Positions 6,588 to 54,107 of a DNA stretch of 64,000 nt are shown piece after piece (position 1 is the first letter of the stretch; each line of letters starts with the position of its first letter). The stretch is from Octopus bimaculoides (lineage: Eukaryota). The position numbers were made by a program, and so were the translations under genes. The stretch spans positions 66,651,073 to 66,715,072 of the forward strand of contig NC_068982.1 of NCBI RefSeq assembly GCF_001194135.2, written 5' to 3'. The notes under the pieces are model-generated. The model was not told where the DNA came from and made no database searches. It worked only from the letters and a program-made list of their open reading frames with translations.

Positions 6588-8110
6588 AGGTAAGAATAAA
6601 GCAATTATGATACATTATATGGATGACCTCGAAATATATACACAAAAGGAAACAGACTCTGATCCAAACAGTAAGAATATTCAGTAAAGAGAGTTTGGAA
6701 GAAAAAGTCTGATGGCATAAAATAACCAAAAGGCATCATTCGACCGTTATGGAATAATGAGGGATACAGATACTTCGGTGTGCTGCAATACGATAAAATA
6801 ATAGTAAGAAAGATGAGAGCGAAAGTCACTAAAGAGTACAAAAAGAGAATTAAGAAGGTGCTCGAAACAAAATTAAATGGATGGAACATCATTGAAACCA
6901 TAATTACATGGGCAATGCCAGTACTGAGATACTCTGCCCCCTTTCTGAAATGTACAAAGATCGAGCTGCAGGTCTTAGAAGATAGAAGAACCGAAAAGAT
7001 GTTAACAATGCATAATGCACACCATCCTAAAATTAATACCGACCGACTCTATCTGCCAAGAAGGGAAGGTGACAGAAGATTACTAAACGCGGAAGACTGT
7101 TGGTACTGCAATACTGAACCTGAAATATTATGTTGTACAGAGTAAAGATAGAATACTTTCGGCAGCCAGAGATACCTAAGAAGTAACTGAAACAGTAAGG
7201 TAATTCAAAGGGAAAAGGAAGAACAACAGAATGAACAAATGGAAAGAAATGGAATTGCATGGCCAATTCATGCAACAAACGGAAAGTGTTGCAAGTGAAG
7301 CCCGGTGGCTTTGGTTGACAGACGGGAACTTGAAACGAGAAACTGAACGTTAATTATTGCCTTTCAGGAACAAGCCCTTAGAACAAATCTAATAAAGACA
7401 AAGAACGACAAAACTCAGTCAGACACTAATTGTAGAATCTACAAGAAAGGAATCGAGAGTATCAATCACATTTTGTGCGAGTGCAGTATACTAGCACAAA
7501 AGGAGAACAAGCGAAGGAGTAGATGCGTAGGCTAAAGAGTACGTTGGGATGTTAGTCGAGTATGTGGCTTCAAAACAACAGAAAAGTGGTATGGGCACGA
7601 ACCAGAGGCAGTGATGGAAAACGAAAATTATAAGATCTTGTGGAACTTCGCCATAAAAGCTGACCATACTATTGAAACCAGACATGATTATAGAGGGCAA
7701 AATAAACAAATAGTGCAAGATCATAGATTTTGCAATTCTCAATGATAGCGGAGTCGATACTCACAAAACGGAAAAAAAAAAAGAAATACCAGGATCTAGC
7801 CAGAGAGCTGAAGCGACTGTGAAAGACCAAGACAACAATTATTTCTGTAATAATAGGGTTCACTTGGCACAATACCCAAAATGCTACTTGAAAAACTGAA
7901 AGAAATTGGAATTGAAACTCACATTGTCGACCTGCAGAAAAGTGTCATCCTATATGTTGCCAGAATCTCATGAAAAAGTCTTGAGATTTGAGGAGACTTG
8001 TAGTCACCAAACCACAAGATAAAATACCTGTTAACTAATAATAGTAATAAACAACAACAACAACAACAACAATAATAATAATAATAATAATAGTAATAAT
8101 AATAACAACA
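6588..8110 (+). mobile_element. 5'-truncated Dong/R4-clade (RLE-type) non-LTR retrotransposon with (CAA)/(TAA)n tail
   Basis: YMDDLEIY (~6616); ORF 6780-7145 with ...LNGWNII..I.TWAMPVLRYSA...DRLYLPRREG; zinc-knuckle remnant ESINHILCEC; ENENYKILWNF; IIDFA / KKYQDLARELKRL; DLQKSVIL; TAA-rich tail. It has several frameshifts and stops. Confidence 0.85.
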
Positions 8111-9074: not shown

Positions 9075-12000
9075 AAACAGAGAGATAAGCTCTTTGAAAA
9101 TTGGGTCTCAAAAGAGTTAGATCTTTTATCAGCCTTAGGACATATAGACCGGAACTTAACCTGGATTTCATGGAGTAGATTGCCATTTCTTTATGTATAA
9201 TTTAGAATAGCAGTTTTAGTTTTCAATGTAATAAAGGATTTAACCCAAATATCACCAGTTTTTACCTAGTTTTGATACGATATAATTCAGTAATGTCACC
9301 AAGTTGTAGACATTGCGCATGCAGAAGGTGTCCTTGAACAATCTTCCCCGGTTAATCTGTTCCCGGTTAATCAGCCAAGCCTTTGACCTCTAGGTCAGTA
9401 ACAGATTGCGCCCACTCCCGTTTTAAAAATTGATTTGCCAATAAAGTAGGCCTAACACAGAATAGTCTTTTCTAATGTTAAAACAGCAGCCGTGTAAGCC
9501 CTGAAAAATTAAATATGTCATGTATATTCATTCCTAACGGACTTACATTGCTTTACATACATTACTATTCCCACTTTGTGCCGTTCTAATTGAACTCTCC
9601 ATCCGAAACTACAGTTTCGTACAAAATTTTGATTAACTTTCGTCTTATCTTTCCTTCGACATCTCCCTTAGAAGCTAGTTTAAAATGGTTGTGATGCGAC
9701 CGAGAATTTTCCTCTAAACACCCTTAGATTTTATGGCGATTTTAATACAATTTCGTGCAGTCGCCTAATTTCTGGAGACAGTGTTGCCAGAAACTATAAT
9801 GTGTGTATAGACTGTTATACATTATTTATTCATTACGGTTAATTAAGGTAACGAATATATTCTGAATCATCCTTTACTGCGATGCAGGGATAACTGACTG
9901 GGCGAGATTAGTACAGTTACTCTTTAATTTCAATTTCAACAGATGAAGTGTTTGAATGATAAATGTGAGCAGGAAGAGGGAGACACTAATGGCGTTGTAA
10001 TGATATTTTGGATTGGGCAGTAATGATTAAGCAATGGAAGACTATTCAGTGGAAACGTCGAAATGAGGACATACAAATAGCTCGAACCGACCGTGGTGAT
10101 GTGCAGTTAGTAATTTCAGAGATCATTGTATTAGTAATAAAAAAAAAAAGGGTAAATGAGTGAAGGTTTGACACTGTATTTAAAAACTGGTATCCACACG
10201 CGCGTGTATAAGGGTGTGTGAAGGTGCGTGTCCCTCTGGTTCTCAGTGTTGGGTTCTATTCCATGGACTGGGCTGCGCGTTGTGTCTTTGAATAAGGTAT
10301 ATCAGTCCACTCAGTTGAAAATGAATATGCACCTAGAGCTGGTGCAGCCCTTTCTTTCCTCTAACAGTCACATTCTTGATGTTTCGCTGAATTAAGTATC
10401 AGAAGACCTAATGAACAATTAATAGCAGTAGAGAAAGACAATAGGCCATATTGGCTTGCGAGTAATGGCTATGTAAGCACACACACACACACACACACAC
10501 ACAATGCGTTCGTGCGTATGTTTTAGTTGTTACATACATTGGGCGGATAGTTGCTGGACATAAAAACTTATCAGTCGGTTGAATGATGATAATGATATCA
10601 AATGAAGTCATGACTTGCTTGCGAATTGAATTGAGAGAGAGGGCAGCGCAATGTCAGCCTCTCTCTCAAGCATGTCTTGATCTGGAGACAAAACGAAATC
10701 AAAAAGGTTGGAAGTAAATCTGGATGAAGTGAATGACCAGGGTTTCTGTCGTGTCTTGTCGTGAAACATGCATTTCAGAACACTTACTAAAAAGTCGCCT
10801 TTCTAATCGTTGAGCCTCCTATTGTTCTCATCCTCTCAATTCCATCGAGTGGATAGATACGCCTTAACTCACGGAAAGTTTGGAATTGAACCCTGGAAAT
10901 TTGAACGTAAAAATACATTTCTTACTTGAAATATTATTAAATGGAACTTTTGAGAACTTTTTAACATTTATTTCTCAATTTTTGCCTTTAATCAGAGCAT
11001 ACGAAGACAGTTCATCTTGATCCTTTGCCTGTCTTGTGTATTACATGTGATACACAAGACACATTTCCATGGTGTCCATGCATCGTATATGTCACACATA
11101 CCCAATTTTTTCAACCACCAGAGTAACCTGGGACATATGAAAGAAAAGCTTTATATTACTCAGAGTATACGAAACGAGGGTTAATTAAAACTCAGAAACA
11201 AGCCTGGATGTTTGGGACAAAGTTATGAGAATGCTTTGAACAGCAAAGGGTTAATTAAATTAATTAAAAGTCAGATAATTAGATAAATAATTTATTTGAA
11301 AAACAATCGTAACTTTAGATAATTTTGACAAAATATATGCATACAATGAAAAACATTACAAAATATTTCTTTAAGCTTTCCATTAGAAATCATACACATC
11401 ATTTTAGTGTGTAAAATTACATTTGAGGACAAACCACCAAGAAAAAAAGAAAATGATTATACAAAGAAAGTGTTTTTAAGTTTCAGAATAAAAGACACCT
11501 TCTCTGTGTCAGTTTATAAAACGCAGATAGATCTTAAGGATACCTTATCTAAAAGGACGGGACTTGTTAGAAACGCAAGCGAGATTTGGAAACTAACTTT
11601 ATTTAAAAACAAATTTGGGGTCTCACGTAGCCAAGTCCTTAAAGATAGAATCCCCCAAAACAGTGCTTCAGAAGTTAAAAAAGGTTTCTTACAACTCAAC
11701 TGGAGTATATGAGAACCCACGTGTTCTCTCGTTAAAACCAGTTCCCTCCGAAATTTTAACTACAGATTTTAAGAATATTTTTTTAAAACATATGTATATC
11801 TTATATATTTAAAATAATGTTTAATGTATTCAAGAGTTAAAGAAGTATTTTAATGGTTTCAAAAAGTGAGAATATAAAGTCGTACAAAAATGAAGAATAT
11901 TAAAAACAGTCGATATATATATATTACACTGATTTGGTAAATAGAATTTATAGAATTTCTATATGAAAGCTTCGTCACACAAAAATGCCAACAACTAGGA

Positions 12001-12094
12001 TAATCCTAGTATTAACAAAGAATGTTCACTTCAAAGTAATGTTTTAATATATAACGGATATATTATGAGCTATACTGTTTCTAAGATAGGTACC

Positions 12095-12275
12095 AGGCTT
12101 GAAAATTGGGGAGGAGTTCGCTGATTACATCAGCCACAAAACTTGACTTGTATTTTATTTTATCAACCCCGGAGGAATGAATGGCAAAATCGATTTCAGT
12201 GGGATATGAACTCGGTAAAGAACCGGATGAAATTCCGCAAGGTATTTTTGTCCAGGCCCAACCGATTTTACCAAT
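12095..12275 (-). mobile_element. Degenerate SINE family C copy
   Basis: Diverged match to the GTCGACTTTGCCTTTCATCCTTTCGGGGTCGATAAA family seen best at 36120-36525. Confidence 0.6.
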
Positions 12276-12358
12276 CCACTTTTCACATAATGTTAAAATA
12301 ATCGCGTGTGTATTATAAAATTTTTCTTAGACATTTTGGTACTCATGTATCTAAAATG

Positions 12359-13378
12359 TTACCATTGATAAAGTGATTGAGTTTTTTCCTCAGAAAAGAG
12401 GAATTCTTTGGATTCTTCCATAGAATAAATTGAATCAGACAACTTCATTTTGCTGTGAATCTCATCAAGTTTCAAATGCAAAAAGGCCCGACACCATAAC
12501 ATATGAATAAGTTCAGTATTATCAATATCCTCTATAAAAGTTAGAATCTTCTGATGAAAACGAGGATAAAGTGATTTTATCAAAGGGAAAAACCGTTTTA
12601 TCAAAATCTTTTTATGAACTTTTGACGTTAAAGGAGCACTGCTAAGTTCACTGAAAATGTTTCCTCCTTGTCCTTGTATTACGATCTGCGGAGATATTTC
12701 TTCTGTTATTCTTTCATCGTCATCAGTGGGTATTTGGTCACCTTCAAGGGTCGAGAATAAATCTTCTCCCAGCAGATGGCGCTCATCTGGAAGCTCAACT
12801 GATTTGTTTAGATTGACGAAACTGTTTTTCACTGCATGTGGTTCTTTCACAGAATAAGCTATTATCTGAGAACGAATTTCATCAATGTGCATTGTGCGGC
12901 AGTCAGCGCATTGTAAGAGATGAAGAATAGCCGAGTTCTCCAAATTTGCCAGTTCATTTGTAATAATATCGGCAATATCTGCACAGTGATGTTGTAGGAC
13001 AACCAAAAGTCGTATTTTGAGTAAACTGTTCAAAGGTTGGCGTCCAGTGAGTAATTGGTGTAGAACGTTATTAGGTTGCGAAAAGTCTTTACATATATCA
13101 ATAACCATAAGAGCCTCTTTCATTCGAATATCAAAGAAGTAACGACAGTCTAACATATGGAACAATTCAGAATAATGGAATGTAGACGCCATTACATAGA
13201 TGATTTCTTTGGCTATTTCAGGATAGAGGCTCTTAATTGTCGGGTACAATAGCTCACCGACTATAACCATTCTTTCTGCTGGGCAGGCCCTGATTAAGGA
13301 ATTTAGAAACTTACGGTTTGTGTTCAGGGATTGTGAAATCGTATTCTGTGATCTCGTTTCAGATTTTATGGAAGACAT
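12359..13378 (-). CDS. 339-aa protein of tandem PABC/MLLE-like domains (three full and one partial), with no RRM
   Basis: The only long non-repeat ORF in the window. Domains: aa24-94 (ERMVIVGELLYPTIKSLYPEIAKEII...SELFHML), aa105-174 (IADIITNELANLENSAILHLL), partial aa187-230 (ERHLLGEDLFSTL) and aa241-311 (LSSAP...KKILIKRFFPLIKSLYPRFHQKILTFIEDIDNTELIHML). These align by eye to the PABPC1 C-terminus ([48 protein letters not shown]). An in-frame TGA at 13391-13393 with no AG before the ATG supports this start. Confidence 0.8.
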   Translation of the reverse strand: MSSIKSETRSQNTISQSLNTNRKFLNSLIRACPAERMVIVGELLYPTIKSLYPEIAKEIIYVMASTFHYSELFHMLDCRYFFDIRMKEALMVIDICKDFSQPNNVLHQLLTGRQPLNSLLKIRLLVVLQHHCADIADIITNELANLENSAILHLLQCADCRTMHIDEIRSQIIAYSVKEPHAVKNSFVNLNKSVELPDERHLLGEDLFSTLEGDQIPTDDDERITEEISPQIVIQGQGGNIFSELSSAPLTSKVHKKILIKRFFPLIKSLYPRFHQKILTFIEDIDNTELIHMLWCRAFLHLKLDEIHSKMKLSDSIYSMEESKEFLFSEEKTQSLYQW

Positions 13379-13816
13379 GTTAATAAAAAGTCACTTCAGG
13401 ATGGCACAAACTTTGCTGACAATTGACCCTGCAAACCTCAAAATTAATCTGAAATCAAGAACAATAGGACAGTCTGTAAAAATTTAACACATACAAGAAG
13501 AAAACTAATCATAACTTTATTAATACTGGCTAATATGTGTGGTACAGTTTCAAATATTCAAAGTTGAAAGCCTAATTACCTCGGTTCACTAACTATTTAG
13601 AATAGGTTCACGTTTTCTACATTCATCCTTATATATCCTTCAAAAACTATAAAAAATTACAGGTGACGTCATCTATCAAAATTACCCTTAAAAATGGGTG
13701 GGGAAACTGAAGAAAATATTTATATACACTTAATTTCCACTAAGTAAGCTCAGTTTATAAACAGTTACATTTAGATTTCCTCTCTCTATATGTATGTGGT
13801 TAACATACATACGTAT

Positions 13817-13995
13817 GTATGTGGTTAACAAGCTCACTTTGCAACTACGTGGTTCTGGATTCAGTCCTACTTTGGGAATAGAGCCCTCTACTACTCATCA
13901 CAGGCTGACCAATGCCTTATGAATGAATTTGCTAGACGAAAACTATGTGAAAGTCCAGCGTGTTTCTTTGTGTGTGTGTGTGTGTGTGTGTGTGT
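13817..13995 (+). mobile_element. SINE family B (CORE-like), 5' part running into a gap
   Basis: Diverged tRNA-like head and central segment followed by (GT)n. Confidence 0.6.
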
Positions 13996-14395
13996 NNNNN
14001 NNNNNNNNNNNNNNNNNNNNNNNNNNNNNNNNNNNNNNNNNNNNNNNNNNNNNNNNNNNNNNNNNNNNNNNNNNNNNNNNNNNNNNNNNNNNNNNNNNNN
14101 NNNNNNNNNNNNNNNNNNNNNNNNNNNNNNNNNNNNNNNNNNNNNNNNNNNNNNNNNNNNNNNNNNNNNNNNNNNNNNNNNNNNNNNNNNNNNNNNNNNN
14201 NNNNNNNNNNNNNNNNNNNNNNNNNNNNNNNNNNNNNNNNNNNNNNNNNNNNNNNNNNNNNNNNNNNNNNNNNNNNNNNNNNNNNNNNNNNNNNNNNNNN
14301 NNNNNNNNNNNNNNNNNNNNNNNNNNNNNNNNNNNNNNNNNNNNNNNNNNNNNNNNNNNNNNNNNNNNNNNNNNNGAGAGAGAGAGAGAGAGAGA

Positions 14396-14470
14396 AGAGA
14401 GAGAAAGGCAAGAGAGAGAAAGGCAAGAGAGAGAAAGGCAAGAGAGAGAAAGGCAAGAGAGAGGGGCAAG
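14396..14470. repeat. 15-bp minisatellite (AGAGAGAGAAAGGCA)x4-5
   Basis: Direct reading. Confidence 0.95.
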
Positions 14471-17400
14471 ATGACTTCGATAGGATTCGAACCCTGATCG
14501 CAGAAAAAGAAAGGCATTAAATAGTGACGATTTGTCGCTTTACCGCTTCACCCAATCCACCGTCCTTGTTCCTCTAACAGCGCAAACATATCTCAGTGCA
14601 TTATCGATTGCTCAAGTGGACGATTGCAAGATCAAGGAGCATCATGATAGCTTGTTCAAATATTTGTAGTTGCCCCACAATGTTTGCTGCTATTAATTGC
14701 TCTGCCTCAGATTTTGTTAATTGACGAGAGCTGCCATAATGTTTATCGATTTTTTTGTTTCGTCTACAAAACAGAAGAACAGAACTCGTATTTGCATAAG
14801 TCGTAGAGAAGGGATATTCTACCAACGCCGAGTGTTTCACTTGACTGAAGGTGCTGAACTCAAATCTTCAGAATAGTCTCGATAAGCCCAGAGAGAACCG
14901 TCTATCTAGATCAGTTGTAAATTCAATATTTCATCGCCAGTGTTATAATAAAATTAAAATGGAACGCGACCGTATTTGAACACCGATATATTGAATTTGT
15001 TCCAATGAAGAATATGCAGGTCAGCTATTTATTTTTTAAAAAAATAAACCAGTTTTCTTTTCATTTTATCTAATGAGTCATTTTCGAATAAATACGATGT
15101 AATACAAGTGCCATAATACATAATGACAGCAGAGGCCACAACATAGTCAATACTATGAAGTTCATCCTTCTCTCAGCAACAACCAGGAGAAATCGAAAAC
15201 ATTGAACTGGCAATTGAAAATTTTCAGCTGCTGTACAGCGCACACTTCGTTATTCCATTACCGTAGTACATATTTACAGCTAAGCTAGAGGAATCCTCGA
15301 CGTGATCGCTCGACCTGCTAAAAGTAACATCCAAATCTCCATCAAATTACATTTTACCAACTAAAGGAAGAACACTGGATAATGTTTATAATCTAACAAA
15401 AAAAGTTGTTAGAGAGAGAGGCTGATCATAAACTGAATGTCTTCGCTCATAATAGATCTGCTCGTTCAGAGCTGATCTGGAATTAAACAGCAATCCCGAT
15501 ACAGCTGGAAATGTGATGTCGACAGTTGAGTGTCTTGGCCATTAACACACCGCTAAGGAGACCACCACCAATTAAATGACTTCAGAATTTGGCTGGAACT
15601 ATAGGACTATTTTAATTGATCTTCAGAGAAGGAAGAGCAAAGATGACTTCGGTGGGAATCGCACCCTGAACGAAAAAAAGGTTTCAGCAAAATTTAAATA
15701 TTCGTTATTTTCATATTGACACGTCAACTGTTATAAATGAAGAGTGTAATGTTAGCTGCCATTATATGCAAGTTAACGTGTCAACTGCACGAAAGAATAA
15801 GTGACCTGACAAATTAACAAGAAGCATCTACGTGGTCACTTGACTTACTAGAAATAACAACCAAATCCTCAACTCAGTACAAACTCAGTACCGGACGGAG
15901 AAGCCTAGGAGTTTGCCTTCCTTCACTGGTCCCTCATGCCTACAGAGCAGAGCCAAAAGTGTCCCCACCACCAATAAAAGCGTTGCCTGCGCTTGGACTG
16001 ATCTCCCCCAGCCCTCTTCCCTAGCTACACAGCTCACTTAACTCTTAAAAAGGATATTTTTAATACGGTTTACTGTTCCAAATATAAAAGACTCACTGAC
16101 TGGGTATAAAGCACCTTTGATTACTGATCCGCTTGATCAAGATGTGGAGCTAAAGACTTTTTTTTTCTTTTTAGCAGAACGAACCCAGTCTCTAGTCGTT
16201 CATTTCCACTGCCTCTGATCACGCACAATATCTTCAGCAATTTACCACATGCATTTTTTAATGGGCCAATGAAAATGACATTCAATTCCTAGATGAACAA
16301 TCACGATTTTTGTCTCATCACTGGCAATGTGCTTAGAGCATGGACAAAGCACAGGAATCTCTTTTCTCTCGTTTAACTGATAGTAAAGCAGTTAAGAAAA
16401 GGAAGTGAATAAATCGATGAGTGCTGAACAAACTGGATTAACCTGTAGTTAGGCGGTCCAACAACTACAGATAACATTTCCTTTCTATTGACAACAAATT
16501 GCTGTTTGAAATCGTAACAAGTAGCAATCGAAATGTCCTCAGGACTAATTTATGATAGATTTATTATTTTGAAGATTCAACATTGACGAGTTCAAAATTC
16601 GTCCTTTCAACTTCGCCTTTTAGCTTTTCGATTCGACAAAATAAGTACCAATCGAGTACTGGAGTCAATAGAATTGATTATACCTGTCTTCTAAATTCGA
16701 ATGTTTTGTCCTTATGTTAGAAATCAATTTCTTTCGGTGACCTAAGAAACTGATAGAGTTTCGATTTCAAGAAGCAGTCATTTCATTTAAAAAAAAAAAA
16801 ATTAAAATAAAATAAAAAATCGTTACGAGCCAACAATGGAAACTTTACGTGGCTGTTTGACCAGCTAGCAATATCAACCAAATTTCCTTCAAACAACACT
16901 GTCATACAAGGCGTAAAACAAAGTTCCAGATAGCGCTAATAAATGTGGGGATCATGGGTTCGTGCAATGGTTAATCTTGGGCTAAACAACATACAGGCTT
17001 TGATATCTATGTAGAGTCAATAACTGCCAGAGATAACCAACTGAGGAATGTGCGAGCCAGTTAGTTGGAGGGTCAGTTTGCATTGGTACTGCATCCAAAA
17101 CAAAGACGACTTTTAATAGTCCAATACAATAGAGTAGGTAGTAGAAGCAATTTACTAGTGACGAGTGATTCGTTAGTTGATAGGTGTGGGACTCAAATAT
17201 TGAGTCTCGTTGGGAAAGCGTCGTTTTAAGATATATTTCTCAAGATAGGATTTATCACTAATAGATTAGGATAAAGTAATAGAATTGATGATTTGTCACA
17301 ATTACTACAAATATAGCACACAAAGTCCTATACTTTAAACGGAACCTGTAGCATTTATTTCTATGGGAGGGGAATGGGTTCAGCGAATCGAAACCGCACT

Positions 17401-17471
17401 ATTGATGCCATTTAATCGATAAGTTAATTTCGACAACTGAGGAGTTAAAAATCGTCAAAAGAAAAATTACC

Positions 17472-17520
<49 letters not shown>

Positions 17521-17873
17521 CATAGAACTCTGCCTATGGTGTAGCTATTAGCCGTTTTAGGTAACTGAATGAAATTAGAAAGGGTGTTCCATGATCAAAT
17601 CTTACAAAGGTGAAAATTCGCAGCGACCAAGTTTGTACCTATGTTAGAAACCAATGCGTTTTGCATTACTACAAATTCACAACTATAGGTATAAAACAAT
17701 ATTCGACGAGCACTTATTTCATCGATTCCTGGAAGGATTAAAGGCTAAATCGACCTCAGCGGGATTTGAACGCAGAATGCACCTAAATGTTGTATGGTAT
17801 TGCCCGAAGCGCTCACGATTTTGCAAGTCAACTATTGGAGTTAAATCCTCATGTTGTACTCATCTATCTTACA

Positions 17874-18248
17874 TTCTTTTACTAGTTTCAGTCATTTGAC
17901 CTGCGGCCATGCTGGAGCACCGCCTTAAAGGGTTTTAGTGGAAGAAATCGATCCTAGGACTTATTCTTTTATAAGCCTAATACTTATTCTACTTGTCTCT
18001 TTTGTCGAACCGCTAAGTTACGCGGACGTAAACACAACACCAGTTGTCAAGCGATGGTGGGGGACAAACACAGACACAAAGACAGACATACAGACAGACA
18101 GACACGGGGTGGGGCTTCTTTCAGTTTCTGTCTACCAAATTCACTCACAATGTTTTGGTTGGCCCGAGGCTACAGTAGAAGACACTAAAAGGGTACCATG
18201 CAGTAGGACGGAACACGGAACAATGTGATTAGGAAGCAAGCTTCTTGC
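17874..18248 (-). mobile_element. SINE family B (tRNA head, CORE-like segment, central microsatellite, conserved tail)
   Basis: Tail GGCGGTGCTCCAGCATGGCCGCAG..AAATGACTGAAAC on the minus strand. Homologous to the other family B copies. Confidence 0.85.
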
Positions 18249-20440
18249 TCTATCAGTGCTGATGTGGGTCTGAACAACGAAAGACTATCAGGCCGAAACT
18301 CTTATAAAAATATAATAAATATGTACTCTACTAAAAACTATAAAGTAATTCTTCAGCTTAATGTTAAATTGTTTTTATTAAAACTTGACCTAAAAATAAA
18401 CATACATTGTGTGTGTGTGTGTGTGTGTGTGAGGTTGGGGAGTGGAAGAGAGAAAGAGAGAGAAACTTTAGCATTCAACTCATCATAAAGTTAATAGTTG
18501 AATTATCTTCAACACGAAAAGATCTAAACGATATTATATTAAAAACAGTATGGTGTCGCCGAAGACTGGGATTTTAGAATCCCTCGTGTCACATTCCTAG
18601 ATAAAACAATAATCACCCGGCCACCAATCAAGTCCTACAATGGTAAACATTTTTTAAAGCCGAACTGACGATACTGTTAGATGGATGTTAATCTTATCAC
18701 CCCTATTAAAATAACAAGCACTTTGTCCTTTTCACTCCTTTAAGAGTATTCAAAAAATCTTATATATGTCCGTTATAAATCTTGATAAAGAGCCAAACGC
18801 TCTGTAAGCGAATTTGTTTTTCTTTTCCCATGGAAAACTTAAGTGGCTGAAAGAATATCTGGTTAACCTTACACAAATTTCAAAGACACCGGAGTAAGAG
18901 AGATAGTGCACTACTAGATGAAATACTCTTCAATGCGAGTTCAAATCAGGCGAGGTTGCCTGTCTTTCATCTTTCCAAATATGAAAGTAAAATGCCAGTA
19001 ATATAAGAGGGTCGATTAAATCAACTATAACTCCATACATGCTAACTTTGCATCACAATGAAAAATATCAACTCTGTTTAACGATTTCAGATTGGAAAAT
19101 AGCTGCAAATCTTACGTTACGACTCTAGCTTTGGACAATGTAGATATTCAAGACATTCAGAGTTGGAAATGAACGAAATGTAGCATTGATATAAATATTG
19201 CAAAAATATACATTGTAAAAAATGAGGTTAATATTTCTTTTCTTTTTCTTTGTTCTACAACGCTTTTTGGTCGAGGAGTCTATTCATTCGATTTACCCGT
19301 ATTTTAAAATACCTAAAAGAAAATGAACTTGAATTAATAAGACATTAATCCAGATGCGATAATGTATCAAGCAATTCATTTACTGCTGCTCCAACCTCAC
19401 CAATCTACATTATTAATTGTTTAAACCTAGGTCAGCCTAGATCAAGCAGACCTACGAACAACGGTGTTTGTATGCTGCTCAAAGCTATCCTAAACAACAA
19501 TACCCTGGATACTCTATATGATTTCTTTTTAAGACAATCGGAGTGAGGAAGTGACTTGGCTGCCATTTCTTATAGGTCGTGTGACCACATATAAACTTTG
19601 TTTTGTTCATTAGTAATTTTATATCTCGAAGTCCTGAGTCATCGCTGAAGGGTGACAAAGGTTTGACGAACAGATATAAACTAGGAACTCGATATCGATT
19701 TTCCGTTGCAGCCATTTCACTACACATGTCTATCATACTCTTGAGAAAAGTCACGAATGCCAGCAACCTCATTTCGTCAACCCTATAGTCTTACCATTGT
19801 CGATCAAGACAGACCATAGAACCATTCACAATGTTTTGATATTCTGACAACTTTTTTTTTTTACACTACGAAGACTAATTTCAGTCTAAGACAGGAAAGA
19901 ATCAAGAGGCGTAGCAAAGAATGTGACAACCAAATTTCACGATCCAGCTTTCGGTGATGTGACAGTGCTGAAAATAATTTCTAACAAAGGCACACAACTT
20001 CATATTTGAGGTATGAATATAATCGATTAGCTCGATTTAGTATTCAACCTGTACCTGCTAACTTATTTGATCGAGCCCGGTAACATGGAAGTTTATCCTG
20101 CCGGAATTTGAACTCAGAACGTAAAGCTATGCAACAAATACTGCATATCTACCAATCCATCCAACAGCACTACTAATATTTGCTTCTCTCATAAGCACGG
20201 GGCCTCAAATTTGGGGCTGAGGAGGTCAGTACTTGACTAGTATTACACTTCATTGACTCCAGAGAGATGAAAAGCAAAGTGGATATCGGCAGGATTTGAA
20301 CTCGGAAGGTAAAGAATATGCAAAGCATTTTTTCCAACGCTTAAATCTATCTGTTAATTCACTGTCCGAAAACGCGTTAATAATGGTTTCTAATTTTAGG
20401 CACTAGGCCAGCAGTTTTTTGGGGTGATAGTACTTTATAT

Positions 20441-20826
20441 TTGTTGTTGGCACTCCGTCGCTTACGACGTCGAGGGTTCCAGTTGATCCGATCGATGGAA
20501 CAGCCTGCTCGTGAAATTAACGTGCAAGTGGCTGAGCACTCCACAGACACGTGTACCCTTAACGTAGTTCTCGAAGATATTCAGCGTGACACAATGTGAC
20601 AAGGCTGACCCTTTGAATTACAGGCACAACAGAAACAAGGAGTAAGAGTGAGAGAAAGTTGTAATGAAAGAATACAGCAGGGTTCGCCACCATCCCCTGC
20701 CGGAGCCTCGTGGAGCTTTAGGTGTTTTCGCTCAATAAACACTCACAACGCCCAGTCTGGGAATCGAAACCGCGATCCTATGACCGCAAGTCCGCTGCCC
20801 TAAACACTGGGCCATTGTGCCTCCAC
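20441..20826 (-). mobile_element. SINE family A, full length with TSD
   Basis: Near-identical to 5553-5927. Flanked by an ACTTTATAT duplication. Confidence 0.92.
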
Positions 20827-20829
20827 ACT

Positions 20830-22480
20830 TTATATTATCGACCGCAAATAAATGAAAGGCAAATTGACCTTGACGGGATTTAAAGTCAGCACGAGACAAA
20901 GGTCGCAAAGCATTTACCCGATGCTTTAACCAATCTGTCATCATTGCTGCTAAAAACACGAAGCATAAAATTTGGCAGAAAGGGGAGGTTTATTACATCG
21001 AACGCACTGCTTAACTAGTACTTGTTTCATCGACCCCGAAAGGATGAAAGGTAAAGTCGACACCGGCAGAATTTGAACAAAACGGAAAGATGGGCGAAAT
21101 GCTGGTAAACATTTTGCCCGGCGTACTAACGATTGTTAGGTCGCCGCCTCGACAGTACTAATAAATTAGCAAAGCAACAAATAAGGTAGCAGTGAATGCT
21201 CGTCAAACTGAGTCCACCAAAGTAGGAAGGATCTGAATTCATTAACAGAAAATGTTAAAAAAAAAGAAACTAATTTAAACCCTACGGAAAGGAAAAGGTA
21301 AATTATCATGAAACCAAAAATCTTCAGAAAGTCTTTTCAATCGTGTTTGAAATATTTACTCTAAACATACGTCATCGTCGATGTCTATCATCATATGCAT
21401 TTCACTCCGAACAGATACCAAGGAACTACATTAAAAATTTTTTATGGTTTAGATGATGAAATATTAACGATGAAAAATGGGCGTTCAGTCAGTATGTCGG
21501 TCCGGGGCTCAGTGAAGCCAAAAGGGTTTGTGGCTATTGTCTGTTGGGCCCTCCTAAAAACAGTCCTATTGAAATTTAAGATGACGTACATTTCCTGGGG
21601 CCTGATAATTAAGATTACTCGTATCTTCTGAAGCCTAGTAAATAAGATGACCAACGTCTCCCGTATCTCTTGGATACTCAGAGAAAGACACCGCCAACGA
21701 ACCATTTCAAGGTCTCCAAGACTGATGGCAGAAAGAAAGACTTATGAGATCTGGCCCAAAATGAAAATAACGCAAGCCAACATTTGCTCATTATAAATAG
21801 CCATAGGTAGGAATAAACCTCCCCATTTCGTGATTTTTTTTTCATTATCACTTCAAAACCCAGCTATGTTTAACTGAGGACCTGTAGAATTAACGTCCAT
21901 TATTGCTAGGAAATATACCCAAATATGTCGACGTAACATTGCTAAAAATAATTCTAATTTAGACACAAGGCCAGCAATTATGTTAGCCCACATGGGTAAT
22001 AAAAAAAAAAAACAGACCCCAGTACTTGCCTAATACTTCTATTTTATTGATCCTAAAAGAATGAAAGGTAAAGTTGATTTCAGCGTGATTTGATCTCAGA
22101 ACGTAAAGAGCCAGAAGAAATGTCGCAAGCATTTTGTCCAACGTCAAAGCTTCTACCAAAAAGACCCCGAAAGGATGAAAGGTAAAGTCGACCTCGGCCG
22201 AATCTGAGCTCACAGCGTAAAGACGGACGAAATGCTGCAAAGCATTTTGTTCGACGTGCTAACAATTCTGACTGCTCACCGCCTCAATAATAATAGTTTC
22301 AAGTTTTGGTACAAATCAGCAGTTTTAGAGAGAGGGTTTAGTCGATGACATCAGCCCTAGTATTCGGCTGCTGCTTATTTTTATCGATCCTGAAAGGGTA
22401 GGATACAAAACTGACCTCGGTGGTATTTCAGTTAGGAAACGCAGTGAACCAGAAGAAATGCCACCAAGCATATTTTCCCG
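20830..22480 (-). mobile_element. Cluster of degenerate SINE family C copies
   Basis: Repeated GACCCCGAAAGGATGAAAGGTAAAGTCGAC-like blocks at about 21030, 22050, 22165 and 22385, mixed with unassigned sequence. Confidence 0.7.
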
Positions 22481-23639
22481 ATGCTCGTCATTTTGATATT
22501 ATTATTCTTAATATACTGGCAGAAAGCTATAACTTAAGTACTGTACGATTGGTTTGATTGGCCTAATTATATAACAGCTACCTGTACAAATTTAAAGTAG
22601 CGAATTGACAGAGTTATAAGAAAGTTGAATAGGGTGCCTTGTATTTTTCGCATCCCAATAAAGTGGTGACTGTTCTCTCAAGTGTTGCGACCAACAGCAA
22701 GCATTAAGAATTTGAAAAACAGATGGAAATGTAGTTTCCATGGTTCGATCCGAAGATCGTCTGCCGCTACTACTTACATAAACTAACGAGGGAAGCATAT
22801 ACATGGTCGTTTGATTTGCTAGAAATAAAGTTTCTCTCATCACATCCAGTCACTATGAAAAGGCATTAGACGATGTGGCTCCAAATATCTCTTTAAAGAT
22901 GGGCTGTTCACAGTTGGAATGCTTTATCAGGGTTACTCTGGGTCTAAACAGCAATAGTTATTTATCGAACATGGAGGAATGGAAAGCAAAGCTTAGAAGT
23001 GGCGGAGTTTCAGTAAAAAATAAAAGGGTACAGACTATATAGCAGCAGGCATGGTCATGTAATTAAGTAGTTCGATTCTTGGAATTTGAACTCGGGAGCA
23101 GAAAGAAACGTATCTAAATATTGCATAGCATTCTCTTCCAACAACTATATTCTACGTTCGAATCTTGCCAAAGTCATCAAAATAAGTGCTTGTAAAATTC
23201 TAGGCAGAGTCAATTGACTAACTACATTTTTCTCTCCAGATTACGAATCCTTGTTCCAATGTAAATTACAATTTCCTTGCAGCCATTTATAATTGTACGA
23301 CGAGGTGAAGTAAGGTTAACTAAATTAATGAATACGACATCCACACTTAAAGCACTTTAAGTATTTAATTGGCAGATACAATAACTACCCTCTAATTAAA
23401 CATGGCCACTAACACTAGCTTATAAAAGAGACAGACTTGGTTTCTTGAAATAGTGGGAGTTTAAAGATAGAGTCGGTCAAGTTTTCAATTGTGATTAATT
23501 ACTGAAAATTAACACTCATTTCGACAAATATGGTGGAATATACAGTACCATCAATTGTAGATTATTAATTTCTTGGTTAAAATGATATAATACTACCTAT
23601 TTTTTTTTAAGTACAGAATATTGATTGCAATATGGTGTG

Positions 23640-23850
23640 TTACGAGGCGGAGAGCTGGCAGAATCGTTAGCACACCGGGCCAAATGCTTGGCATTTCGTC
23701 CGTCTTTACATTCAGAGTTCAAATTCCACCGAGATCGACTTTGCTTTTCATCCTTTCGAGGTCGATAAAATGAATACTAGTTGAGTACTGGGGGCCGATG
23801 TAATCGACTACCCCACCCTGAACTTGCAGGCATTGTGCCAAAATTTGAAA
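23640..23850 (+). mobile_element. SINE family C copy
   Basis: GAGCTGGCAGAATCGTTAGCACACCGGGC...GATCGACTTTGCTTTTCATCCTTTCGAGGTCGATAAAA. Confidence 0.85.
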
Positions 23851-23909
23851 GTTGAAATCAATATGGTGCGTTACTGAGGGAAACCTATCTAATTTAAAAT
23901 ATACAACAG

Positions 23910-24270
23910 TATAGGTGTTGGCATGGTTGTGCGGTTAAGGAGTTTGCTTTGCAGCCATGTAGTTTCAGGTTCAGTTCCACTGTGCAGCACTTTGGACAAG
24001 TATCTTCTGTTATAGACACGTAAGTGAATTGGCAGACGGAAACTGCACGGAAGCTCATCATGTGTTTATAAGTGCGTGGCTGTTTGTCTCTCTCAACTTG
24101 AAAACCTGTTAGTTTGTTTACATCCCTATGACTTAGCATTTAGGGTGGAGGGGTAAGAATACCGATAGAATAAGTATCAGACCTCAAATAAGTAGTGGAA
24201 TCGATTTCATCGAGCAATACCACCCTCACTACGTGGTGCCCCAGCATGGCCACGGTCCAATGATCAGAGT
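23910..24270 (+). mobile_element. SINE family B copy
   Basis: tRNA-like head, GCACTTTGGACAAGT CORE-like segment and tail. Confidence 0.8.
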
Positions 24271-24665
24271 ATATACAAAACTGAGGACACTGACTTGGTT
24301 AACTTAAGAGCGAAAGATTGTTCCTGACTAAATATTTTTTTCCAATTTCAGTACAATGCCAGCAATTTTAAAAGCAACGGGAAATCCAATTACATCGACC
24401 TCGGTACTCAACTGCTATTTACGTTATCGACCCCGAAAGGATGAATGGCAAAGTCGACCTCAGCAGAATTTGAACTCAACGGAAAACGTCGGAATTAGAG
24501 AAGATAGTATTGATTCCTTACTTAGGAGCACAAATATATGGAAGAGATAAAGATTAGGCAATATCCAAGTCCTTTACATTTAATAGATTTGTTGCCAATA
24601 GTAAATTGCTCGCAGAGAAAGGTCCTCAGGAACTTAAGAAGGGTCATACTCACCAAATATTAATA

Positions 24666-24850
24666 CTGTATTTGATGGCATATAAGACGCACACTTTTCT
24701 TTCTAAAAAAAAAAAAAAAAAAAAATATCCCCAAATAAAATAAATAAATAAATCACCCCGGGTCTTCTATGCGAAGCTGAGCCTCCCCATAAGTTCTTCG
24801 GAATATGCGCTGCCGAAATTAGGTTGCGTCTCTTGCGCCAGCAAATACCG
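24666..24850. mobile_element. Tc1/pogo-type MITE with TA target duplication
   Basis: TIRs are CTGTATTTGATGGCATATAAGACGCA and (reverse complement) CGGTATTTGCTGGCGCAAGAGACGCA, with TA on both sides. A related, older copy is at 56333-56516. Confidence 0.8.
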
Positions 24851-25249
24851 TATAAACAATTTTAGTCAACGAACCACATCAATCGGGCCAAAATTGTAGA
24901 GTAAATTAGTCACCTTCCAACACAGAAGTTAAAAAAAAAACAACTTTCAACAGTAGGAAGAGGAGAGTGAACTCTGAATAACAATATCAAAATAGTGACT
25001 GCTGTATCAAGGCGTGTTTGATTACCTGTTGCGCTATGAAGGTGGACGTGATGTTGCCCACATTGACATTCGACTACGTTTAAGACAAGCCCAGCAGTTA
25101 GTACCATAACTATATATACAGTCAGTAGAAATTGATAAAGAACGAAAACTAGGCCTCGTTTAAAACAAAGTATATAACAAGTTTATATAAAGTGGAATTA
25201 AATAACTTTATCGACAAGAGGCATACCTGTTCACCTCTTGTCTAACCGA

Positions 25250-52899: not shown

Positions 52900-54107
52900 C
52901 CCTTGTTTAAGACGCCTAGGTATTCCATTCATTTCCCAGCTCAACGAGGCAAGCTCCATTCTATGCTCGGGTCAAGGCAAAGAATGCATCCCCCCAATAT
53001 CAGAAGCGGGGCCCGACAGCATATGCTGGTTTACCCCCACCGCATCATACTGGTTCCGTATCCTTTTGAGCAACATCAAATTCACTCATCCGTCCACAAA
53101 CACTCTCCAAGTTTCCCTGTCTCTTACCTCTCTCATTCCAACACCTCTAGCCACCAAAGCTTTCCTCATCCCTTCCATCCATCCACACAAACCGAGGTCT
53201 GCCTCAGGTTCTGCTGCCTACCATTTCTGCCTTCATCACACTCCTTACCATCCGCTCCTCATCCATCCTCTCTTTGTGGCCAAACCACTTCAACATTTGT
53301 CTATCCATTTTGGTTGTTAGTTTTTCTCTCATTCCTGCTCGCCTTCGCACCTCCTCATCCTATCCACCCGTGTCACACCAACCATAGCCCTCAGACATCT
53401 CCAACATCTAGTCGCCTCCTTTCCGCCTCTCCTATTCCCCACATCTCTGCACTCTATAACATTGTTGGCACAATCATGCCCTCATACACACCTCTTTTCG
53501 TTTTCATACTCAACATTTTATCTCTCAGCATACCTTTCACAACTCCAGGTATCTTACTCTCCTCCCTCACTCTGTATCCCCCTTTCCTCAGCTAACCTCC
53601 CATCCGCTGTCACATGTGATCCCAGATACTTAAAAACACTCATCTCCTGTAACATCTCACATCCATCCAACCAGCCATTCCATGTCTCGAACATCTCACC
53701 ACCTTACTCTCAACTACATTCACTTTCAGTTTCCTCCTCTCACACACTCTTCCAAACTCTACCACCAGTCTCCTCAGTTGCTCTTCCGAATCCGCCACCA
53801 GTGCTGTATCATCAGCAAACAAGAACGGACTCACCTGCCATTTTTTTCCATTTTCTCCTACCATTTGGGCTCCCCGACCAAAAGTTGTAGCATTCACCTC
53901 TCTCACCACACCATCCATATATAAATTAAACAGCCACGGATATTTCACACAACCCTGTCTTAACCCCACCTTCACATCAAACCACTCACTCATTTCACCA
54001 CCCACCCTAACGCACGCCCTACCTTCTCTATAAAAACTCAGAATAGCTCTCAGTAATCTACCATCTACTCCACACAACCGCAACACCTGCCACATTGCAT
54101 CCCTGTC
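52900..54107 (-). mobile_element. 5'-truncated RTE-clade LINE (RT domain to 3' UTR)
   Basis: ORF 54095-53640: MWQVLRL.GVDGRLLRAI.SFY...VGLRQGC..PWLFNLYMDGVVRE...LFADDTALVADSEEQL.RLV.EFGRVCERRKLKVNV. After frameshifts it continues FKYLGSHV..., VYEGMIVPTML, KWFGH.ERM. Confidence 0.92.

Follow-up and report, generated by a model that had tools for sequence, protein, structure and literature searches.

The question raised by this locus is whether an uninterrupted open reading frame (ORF) in a 64,000-nucleotide stretch of the Octopus bimaculoides genome (assembly GCF_001194135.2, contig NC_068982.1, positions 66,651,073 to 66,715,072; hereafter the window) represents a genuine gene for a protein made of tandem MLLE domains and, if so, what kind of peptides these domains may dock. 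The ORF lies at window positions 12359-13378 on the minus strand and runs from ATG to TAA, encoding 339 amino acids (aa) according to the ORF listing, in which the stop is included. An initial annotation, made from the sequence alone, had read it as a stand-alone protein of three full and one partial MLLE repeats that might act as a scaffold or a decoy for proteins carrying the PAM2 motif. Here we show that the triple-MLLE gene is bona fide, conserved, expressed and specific to coleoid cephalopods, that all three of its repeats have the MLLE fold, and that the residues with which human PABPC1 contacts PAM2 are almost all replaced in them. The reading that we favour on balance, with modest confidence, is that of a coleoid-specific adaptor derived from a poly(A)-binding protein (PABP), the three MLLE grooves of which would have been remodelled away from PAM2 towards a non-canonical peptide specificity.

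The MLLE character of the repeats emerged from several kinds of comparison. Against the Pfam MLLE model (PF00658, gathering cutoff 27) the whole protein scored 54.9 bits, while single repeats were at or beyond the edge of detection; repeat 1 (R1) reached 25.5 bits and repeat 3 (R3) 23.2 bits, both slightly below the cutoff, and neither repeat 2 (R2) alone nor the linker alone gave any Pfam match. R2 was recovered by profile and fold. Profiles for each repeat were built from six-species alignments of R1, R2 and R3, and that of R2 matched the human PABPC1 MLLE in the PDB with E = 1.6e-4, gap-free across the full domain. Comparison of the repeats with each other by hhalign related R2 to R3 (E = 8e-7, 91.6% probability) and R1 to R3 (E = 6.8e-13), R1 against R2 being weak. 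A phmmer search of PDB sequences aligned aa 229-310 to human PABPC1 (1g9l) with E = 4.4e-9, and this alignment takes in the pre-MLLE linker segment SPQIVIQGQGGNIFSELSSAP against its PABPC1 counterpart; R3, together with linker residues 229-235, preserves the pre-MLLE segment “V.GQ..L....L...P”. At the level of structure, AlphaFold2 predicted three helical bundles at aa 33-96, 102-177 and 237-315 with a predicted local distance difference test (pLDDT) score of ~70-87, and left the N-terminus, the linker (177-236) and the tail disordered. When the full model was searched with Foldseek, the top 26 PDB hits were all PABP MLLEs (human PABPC1 and PABPC3, fungal Pab1), each with probability 1.0, and the template modelling score of this predicted model against MLLE structures was 0.64-0.87 normalised to the target. 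R2 modelled alone folded into five helices (pLDDT 74), and its top 34 Foldseek hits were exclusively MLLE, with root-mean-square deviations of 1.1-2.4 Å and with MLLE2 of the fungal protein Rrm4 (7pze) lower in the list. Taken together, Pfam, the profile searches, AlphaFold and Foldseek confirm three full repeats of the MLLE fold. At the DNA level the ORF shows no detectable tandem repetition, which indicates that the duplication of the repeats is ancient.

The peptide-binding pocket tells what may have become of PAM2 recognition. In human PABPC1, the essential Phe10 of PAM2 sits on Gly563, Glu564, Phe567, Thr582 and Leu586, and the amide of this Phe bonds to the Gly579 carbonyl, Gly579 being described as perfectly conserved; Leu3 and Ala7 of PAM2 contact Met584, Leu585, Ile588, Lys606, Glu609 and Ala610, and backbone hydrogen bonds to PAM2 are made from Lys580, Gln560 and Glu564 (PMC2854688). 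We mapped these residues on 18 repeat sequences, i.e. three repeats in each of six species. Gly579 is lost in all 18. Only octopod R1 retains Gly563; its place is taken by Ser in R1 of decapodiforms, by an invariant Lys in R2 and by Ile or Leu in R3. Met584 is replaced throughout (V/I, E/K or F/A), Thr582 is mostly replaced, and Lys580 is retained only in R3 of two Octopus species, whereas position 567 is Tyr in octopod R1, Leu in R2 and variable in R3. The KITGMLLE signature of canonical PAM2-binding MLLEs, with its Gly579, Lys580, Thr582 and Met584, is therefore missing, and the pocket that Gly563 and Phe567 form for the PAM2 phenylalanine is not present as a whole; the nearest approach is octopod R1, which keeps the equivalents of Gly563, Glu564 and Tyr567, a combination absent from decapodiforms. 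A precedent for such changes is provided by Rrm4, where MLLE1 and MLLE2 carry Ser and Arg at the pocket Gly and show no binding of PAM2 or of its relative PAM2L, although MLLE2 nonetheless has an accessory function (PMC9249222; pocket residues from PMC11572963). The loss of the PABPC1 contact residues, together with the Rrm4 precedent, weakens the idea of a PAM2 decoy.

If PAM2 contacts have gone, other residues of this protein have been strictly kept. Within the acidic linker between R2 and R3 lies the segment DERHLLGEDLFSTLEG (aa 198-213), in which six species share 12 out of 16 residues (the invariant columns are E199-T210 and G213) and the differences between species comprise 0-2 nonsynonymous against up to 12 synonymous changes. 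The segment resembles MLLE helix alpha2 and aligns with R1 in the right register. As a partial fourth MLLE repeat it lacks statistical support, the hhalign comparison giving E = 0.072 and a probability of 0.8%, and neither Pfam nor the MLLEs of the PDB yielding a match. The repeat count of the initial annotation is thus confirmed for its three full repeats but not for the partial one. A PAM2 motif inside the triple-MLLE protein was searched for and not found. Besides the linker motif, the features invariant in the family are RQPLN at the opening of R2, Lys121, GQGG before R3 and four cysteines. In each repeat Cys replaces Glu598 (Cys78 in R1, Cys157 in R2 and Cys296 in R3), and Cys160 is likewise invariant in the six species; Glu598 is part of human “HMLES”, and R2 has a CxxC. 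The cysteine codons lie at 13145-13147 (Cys78), 12908-12910 (Cys157), 12899-12901 (Cys160) and 12491-12493 (Cys296). As far as sequence can tell, these cysteines could constitute a metal site, a redox feature or a mere family signature. Considered together, the family-specific invariant residues (RQPLN, Lys121, the four Cys, GQGG and the linker motif) argue for interaction surfaces that are conserved but different.

The structure of the gene could be deduced from RNA. In a run from the source species (X1), a contig of 1073 nucleotides spans the junction between a non-coding exon 1 and the coding exon, and X1 contigs cover the coding sequence (CDS) and the 3' untranslated region (UTR). The canonical GT-AG junction of the 11.6-kb intron fixes the direction of transcription, and the mRNA thus seen is spliced from two exons, the second of which holds the whole CDS. 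Past the splice acceptor, and 15 nucleotides before the ATG, there is an in-frame TGA, so that upstream exons cannot extend the protein at its N-terminus. This stop had already been invoked in support of the ATG, and it is present as described; likewise, the uninterrupted frame of 1020 bp is found with exactly the coordinates first proposed, its minus-strand orientation being an addition of the present analysis, and the mRNA structure bears out a stand-alone protein made of MLLE domains only. Pfam detected no RRM (RNA recognition motif), HECT or other further domain in the 339-aa protein, and no RRM-coding DNA was found in the 64-kb window, where a tblastn search with an RRM-containing Mytilus PABP matched the MLLE repeats only; the objection that this exon might be spliced to RRM or HECT exons therefore falls, and the protein stands alone. 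The frame is also unlikely to be an accident of composition, its stop-free run of 343 codons comparing with longest runs of at most 217 and on average 136 codons in 200 shuffles. It is the sole long genuine ORF, and by far the longest real one, in a window of AT-rich (~36% GC), repeat-rich eukaryotic DNA with N-gaps, microsatellites and a reverse-transcriptase fragment. The identical 339-aa protein is already present in NCBI, UniRef and EukProt as an uncharacterised protein or a PABC-domain protein, and we found no study in the literature on this gene or its accessions. The coordinates of all features are collected in Table 1.

Table 1. Features of the triple-MLLE gene and its product, in window positions.
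Feature	Position	Strand	Remarks
Non-coding exon 1	25026..25136	minus	at least 111 nt; positions 1-111 of the X1 RNA contig map here and continue at 13448
5'UTR intron	13449..25025	minus	11,577 bp, GT..AG; donor cag/GTAATC, acceptor tttcAG/att
5'UTR portion of coding exon	13379..13448	minus	contains in-frame TGA 13391-13393
Complete CDS	12359..13378	minus	339 aa + stop, 39.3 kDa, isoelectric point (pI) 5.9, one coding exon
Repeat 1 (aa 25-97)	13088..13306	minus	MLLE-like; Pfam 25.5 bits, hhalign vs R3 E = 6.8e-13
Repeat 2 (aa 98-177)	12848..13087	minus	most divergent MLLE-like domain; Lys for Gly563; CxxC aa 157-160
Acidic linker (aa 178-235)	12674..12847	minus	pI 4.3, predicted disordered, pLDDT ~28-39
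Linker motif DERHLLGEDLFSTLEG (aa 198-213)	12740..12787	minus	invariant; strongest constraint in the protein
Repeat 3 (aa 236-315)	12434..12673	minus	most PABPC-like MLLE, basic (pI 9.5); Ile/Leu for Gly563
C-terminal tail (aa 316-339) + stop	12359..12433	minus	poorly conserved, predicted disordered
3'UTR	11400..12358	minus	at least ~960 nt; X1 contigs 11508-11798 and 11860-12409; 2.2-kb X2 and X3 contigs cover 11400-13450

The same transcript structure recurs in other cephalopods. The orthologue was found in RNA runs of two further Octopus species (organisms B and C), the reads of which were compared with the window itself at 85% identity. In organism B, single 2.2-kb contigs in runs X2 (word depth 44) and X3 (word depth 8) hold the 3'UTR and the CDS and match up to the acceptor; the overhang of the X2 contig matches exon 1 of the window, so the orthologous exon is spliced there, and the contigs of organism C likewise break at the acceptor. 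Every indel that the contigs of these two species show relative to the window CDS is in frame. A cuttlefish RNA contig leaves its genomic contig exactly at a conserved TTTCAG/TCTTGG acceptor, ~90 nucleotides before the ATG, and equivalent acceptors are conserved in O. sinensis, in Argonauta and at the decapodiform locus L003. Contigs of L009-L012 continue collinearly into the genomic DNA on the upstream side of the acceptor; they represent DNA or unspliced RNA and are uninformative on splicing. X1 is the only one of the listed runs of source-species RNA to hold the transcript, and expression of the gene looks restricted.

Some further observations concern the untranslated parts of the mRNA. 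Exon 1 has three upstream ATGs, which open upstream ORFs (uORFs) of 28, 11 and 9 codons; that of 28 codons crosses the splice junction and ends just beyond it, and the other two are in the frame of the main ORF. Control of the translation of this mRNA through uORFs is possible. In X3 of organism B, the sequence upstream of the conserved acceptor (window 13450) differs from the exon 1 orthologue, which suggests an alternative first exon or promoter. In the 3'UTR, the segment 12141-12188 is of very high copy number, the word depth of contigs rising there from ~4 to >2000 in runs of other species, and many contigs end at this point. It is probably a fragment of a SINE-like (short interspersed nuclear element) repeat; such repeats are abundant in octopus genomes.

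Intact orthologues of ~327-344 aa occur across Octopus, Argonauta and cuttlefish. The protein of Octopus sinensis (LOC115227873) has 338 aa and 89% identity, a further octopod orthologue has 340 aa and 86% identity, that of Argonauta hians has 344 aa and 57% identity, and two decapodiform orthologues of ~327-328 aa have 44% identity. One of the decapodiform orthologues falls in the cluster of the Acanthosepion pharaonis “PABC domain-containing protein” and is also carried by reads of A. esculentum. Two deviating lengths were met with in the databases. The 354 aa of the decapodiform entry P0004 (L003 10985-11065) are an artefact of the ENA gene call, in which two TGA codons were read as Trp and 26 spurious C-terminal residues were added; the protein encoded at L003 truly ends in “...TSLC” at ~328 aa. 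P0007 of Octopus vulgaris (CAI9717690.1) is annotated at 302 aa against the 338-339 aa of O. sinensis and the window, and is probably a truncated gene model rather than a true difference. Around the O. sinensis locus, the flanking DNA is syntenic with that of the window (87-92% identity). An exhaustive HMMER search of 1.84 billion representative proteins returned full-length relatives in only two clusters, which are octopod and decapodiform, respectively; the matches that come next are to the MLLE domains of other proteins. As both clusters are coleoid, the family is coleoid-specific as far as public data go, in agreement with the lineage-specific character that had been presumed for it.

The action of selection on the family was evaluated from the ratio of nonsynonymous to synonymous substitution rates (dN/dS; Nei-Gojobori), a check that the initial annotation had recommended. 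This ratio is 0.51 between the window and O. sinensis (dS 0.10), 0.33-0.40 in comparisons with a third Octopus-like species, 0.18-0.19 against Argonauta and 0.07 between the two decapodiforms. The values drop with distance and the gene is under purifying selection; the deficit of nonsynonymous changes is significant even among close species (binomial test: p = 0.012 for the window against O. sinensis, 6.7e-6 for the window against L009 and 8e-5 for O. sinensis against L009).

Several known proteins resemble the triple-MLLE protein in one respect or another. The closest in architecture is Rrm4 of Ustilago maydis (PMC9249222, PMC11572963), which Devan et al. (2022, PMC9249222) present as the first case of several MLLEs in a single protein. 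Like the cephalopod protein, Rrm4 combines three tandem MLLE folds joined by flexible linkers in one polypeptide; its accessory MLLEs are without the pocket Gly, do not bind PAM2 and are for this reason thought to have other ligands, and its divergent domains are recognisable only by profile or structure methods, as is the case with cephalopod R2. Rrm4 is, however, a fungal protein with three N-terminal RRMs, and its MLLE3 keeps the Gly and binds the PAM2L of Upa1, whereas the cephalopod protein is RRM-less, has no repeat with a full pocket (R3 included, which is without the pocket Gly) and would have arisen independently in animals. With three MLLEs but no RRMs it does not qualify as an RNA transporter of the Rrm4 type and is an architectural analogue only. 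To the MLLE of PABPC1 (PF00658; PDB 1g9l, 3kus and 3ktp, among others) the repeats are linked by the five-helix fold, by 26-35% identity and by the “DNSELLHML” core of helix 4, kept in all cephalopod repeats; they differ from it in being three copies instead of one, in the replacement of KITGMLLE and the PAM2 contacts, and in having Cys for Glu598. The four N-terminal RRMs of PABPC have no counterpart in the protein, and the transcript structure excludes upstream coding exons.

Two more proteins show that an MLLE may live outside a PABP. Arabidopsis MPC (MATERNALLY EXPRESSED PAB C-TERMINAL; Tiwari et al. 2008, via PMC4122942) is a stand-alone RRM-less derivative of the PABP C-terminus, with restricted expression and accelerated evolution in comparison with its parent. 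It differs in having one PABC of canonical type, in being a young duplicate of Brassicaceae and in being proposed as a competitor for PAM2 (CID) proteins; the cephalopod protein, with its three remodelled domains, is older than the split of octopods and decapodiforms. UBR5/HYD carries an MLLE that is not part of a PABP and sets a precedent for intramolecular binding, in this case of a PAM2-like sequence in its own HECT domain; it belongs to the HECT E3 ligases, is very large and has a single canonical MLLE, in contrast to a cephalopod protein of 339 aa with no HECT, and the UBR5 MLLEs in the PDB matched the latter with E values of 0.4-0.5, far worse than PABPC1.

Tandem MLLEs are, moreover, predicted in a number of uncharacterised proteins, mostly molluscan. 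The Octopus vulgaris “polyadenylate-binding 4-like” models P0165 (CAI9723531.1) and P0017 (CAI9723533.1) comprise 19 and 7 canonical MLLEs, respectively, with no RRMs, a period of ~93 aa and KITGMLLE kept; they are either a striking tandem array or an artefact of assembly or gene modelling. Other such predictions come from Babylonia (LOC143283779, seven MLLEs), the crinoid Anneissia (LOC117122709, three), Plakobranchus, Haliotis, Mytilus, Nucella and the plant Kingdonia. Although several of the invertebrate models are RRM-less too, their repeats are canonical with KITGMLLE kept, none is a full-length relative of the triple-MLLE family, and none is characterised. The near-identical repeats of many of these models may in part reflect recent tandem duplication or artefacts of model and assembly. 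With Rrm4, MPC and these many molluscan predictions at hand, the suggestion of the initial annotation that no characterised protein shows this architecture went too far.

How the protein works can be read in more than one way. The proposal first made for it was that an RRM-less protein lures PAM2 proteins (eRF3, PAIP, GW182, Tob, PAN3, ataxin-2, LARP4) away from poly(A)-bound PABPC or links several of them together. The MLLE fold of all three repeats would suit this role, for which a plant stand-alone PABC protein has been proposed (PMC4122942), and so would Gly563, Glu564 and Tyr567 of octopod R1 and Lys580 in R3 of two Octopus species. Nonetheless, we regard it as rather unlikely, as Gly579 is gone from every repeat in every species, Met584, Thr582 and Lys580 are mostly replaced, the site of Gly563 is filled by Lys in R2 and by Ile or Leu in R3, and even the pocket residues that survive differ between octopods and decapodiforms (Gly563 of R1 becoming Ser); Rrm4 MLLEs without the pocket Gly bind no PAM2 (PMC9249222). 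The proposal of a decoy or multivalent PAM2 scaffold is thus not supported by the residues of three repeats in six species. It is also doubtful, though it would be compatible with the adaptor reading that we favour and is not mutually exclusive with it, that the linker motif DERHLLGxDLFST is itself the key functional short linear motif, which would bind an MLLE-like groove of its own protein (e.g. that of the basic R3, in autoinhibition or self-association) or recruit an external partner, in which case the MLLE bundles would mostly provide a scaffold. No other part of the protein is under stronger constraint than this motif, the acidic linker (pI 4.3), predicted to be disordered, adjoins the basic R3 (pI 9.5), and intramolecular binding of MLLE and PAM2L is documented for UBR5 (discussed in PMC9249222). 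On the other hand, AlphaFold2 docked the motif on no domain (pLDDT ~30, from a shallow alignment), and its sequence does not fit the consensus of PAM2 or of PAM2L (FxP, FxxP and FxY cores).

Two further possibilities concern the gene rather than its function. The ORF might be a single exon from a larger gene, PABP-like or UBR5-like, with the RRM or HECT exons located elsewhere, considering that MLLE is normally C-terminal in PABPC, that the true 5' end of exon 1 is unmapped and that X3 has an alternative 5' end. This is very improbable in view of the in-frame TGA between acceptor and ATG, of an exon 1 with short uORFs only, of 2.2-kb full-length RNA contigs terminating in the 3'UTR, of the absence of RRM-coding sequence within 64 kb, and of orthologues that are all annotated or assembled as stand-alone proteins of ~330-340 aa. 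Hardly credible at all is the view that the ORF is a retrocopy or pseudogene in decay, or that it arose by chance or from a transposon and has no function as a protein. Such an origin could be suspected from an intronless CDS in repeat-rich DNA, from the dN/dS of 0.51 for the closest pair and from low or restricted expression, but the ORF is intact and of similar length in at least six species of both coleoid superorders, dN/dS declines to 0.18 and 0.07 in the more distant comparisons and the nonsynonymous deficit is significant, the 5'UTR intron is conserved in a spliced mRNA, and the ORF is longer than in all shuffles.

The reading that we favour remains that of a PABP-derived adaptor. The protein would descend from the C-terminal part of a cytoplasmic PABP, because R3 still bears the pre-MLLE linker sequence, and its layout places the divergent R1 and R2 next to each other, followed by the 58-aa acidic disordered linker with its 16-aa motif and by the basic, PABPC-like R3. 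Having no RNA-binding domain, it would act as a putative protein-protein adaptor, presumably in the cytoplasm, with MLLE grooves re-specified to dock other short linear motifs in a tissue-restricted setting, and the invariant linker motif may be an extra or an intramolecular ligand. By analogy, its mode of action is most likely comparable with that of the accessory MLLE1 and MLLE2 of fungal Rrm4 and not that of a simple PAM2 decoy. Perhaps, and this can only be put forward tentatively, the family is a coleoid innovation in which an RRM-less platform of three MLLEs with a built-in linear motif recognises new non-PAM2 docking motifs and would rewire assemblies of messenger ribonucleoprotein or translation factors, limited to some tissue or stage (e.g. 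germline or nervous system), as part of a wider multiplication of MLLEs in molluscs. Several points weigh against the adaptor reading. Three deep RNA-seq runs of the source species from 2026 (X14-X16, ~1.7-1.9 Gb sampled from each) have zero depth across the gene. Between the Octopus species nearest to each other dN/dS is rather high (0.3-0.5), which signifies moderate constraint. The AlphaFold2 models were built on six sequences only and have a mean pLDDT of 59 for the full protein and 74 for R2. Weak binding of PAM2 or a PAM2-like peptide by octopod R1, the repeat to which any canonical PAM2 sequestration would mainly fall, is possible, judging from its residues, and MLLE specificity is not reliably readable from sequence.

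Some other features of the window were noted. An ORF of 151 aa at 53640-54095 on the minus strand matches the Pfam model RVT_1 (E = 3.3e-11) and is a retrotransposon fragment, and a similar-looking ORF at 6780-7145 has no Pfam match. Two assembly gaps (runs of N) are found at ~640-1100 and at 14000-14370, the second of them within the 5'UTR intron of the triple-MLLE gene, where a GT/CA microsatellite (13960-13995) adjoins it on one side and a 15-bp tandem repeat (14381-14463) on the other. Pile-ups of RNA reads on these low-complexity flanks do not mirror local transcription.

The interest of this family is tempered by the presence of the protein in databases and by the commonness of tandem-MLLE predictions in molluscs. 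Its importance lies in the domain itself, as the MLLE is a main docking hub of post-transcriptional control, serving translation termination, deadenylation, microRNA silencing and regulation by LARP proteins and ataxin-2. To our knowledge, fungal Rrm4 is the only characterised variation on the MLLE outside PABPs and UBR5. A metazoan family of RRM-less triple-MLLE proteins that is conserved in octopods and decapodiforms alike and has systematically remodelled pockets would offer a natural experiment on the evolution of MLLE specificity, and it could expose new MLLE-binding motifs. Cephalopods are known for their unusual RNA biology, which makes a lineage-specific adaptor derived from a PABP a reasonable candidate for a regulator in these animals.

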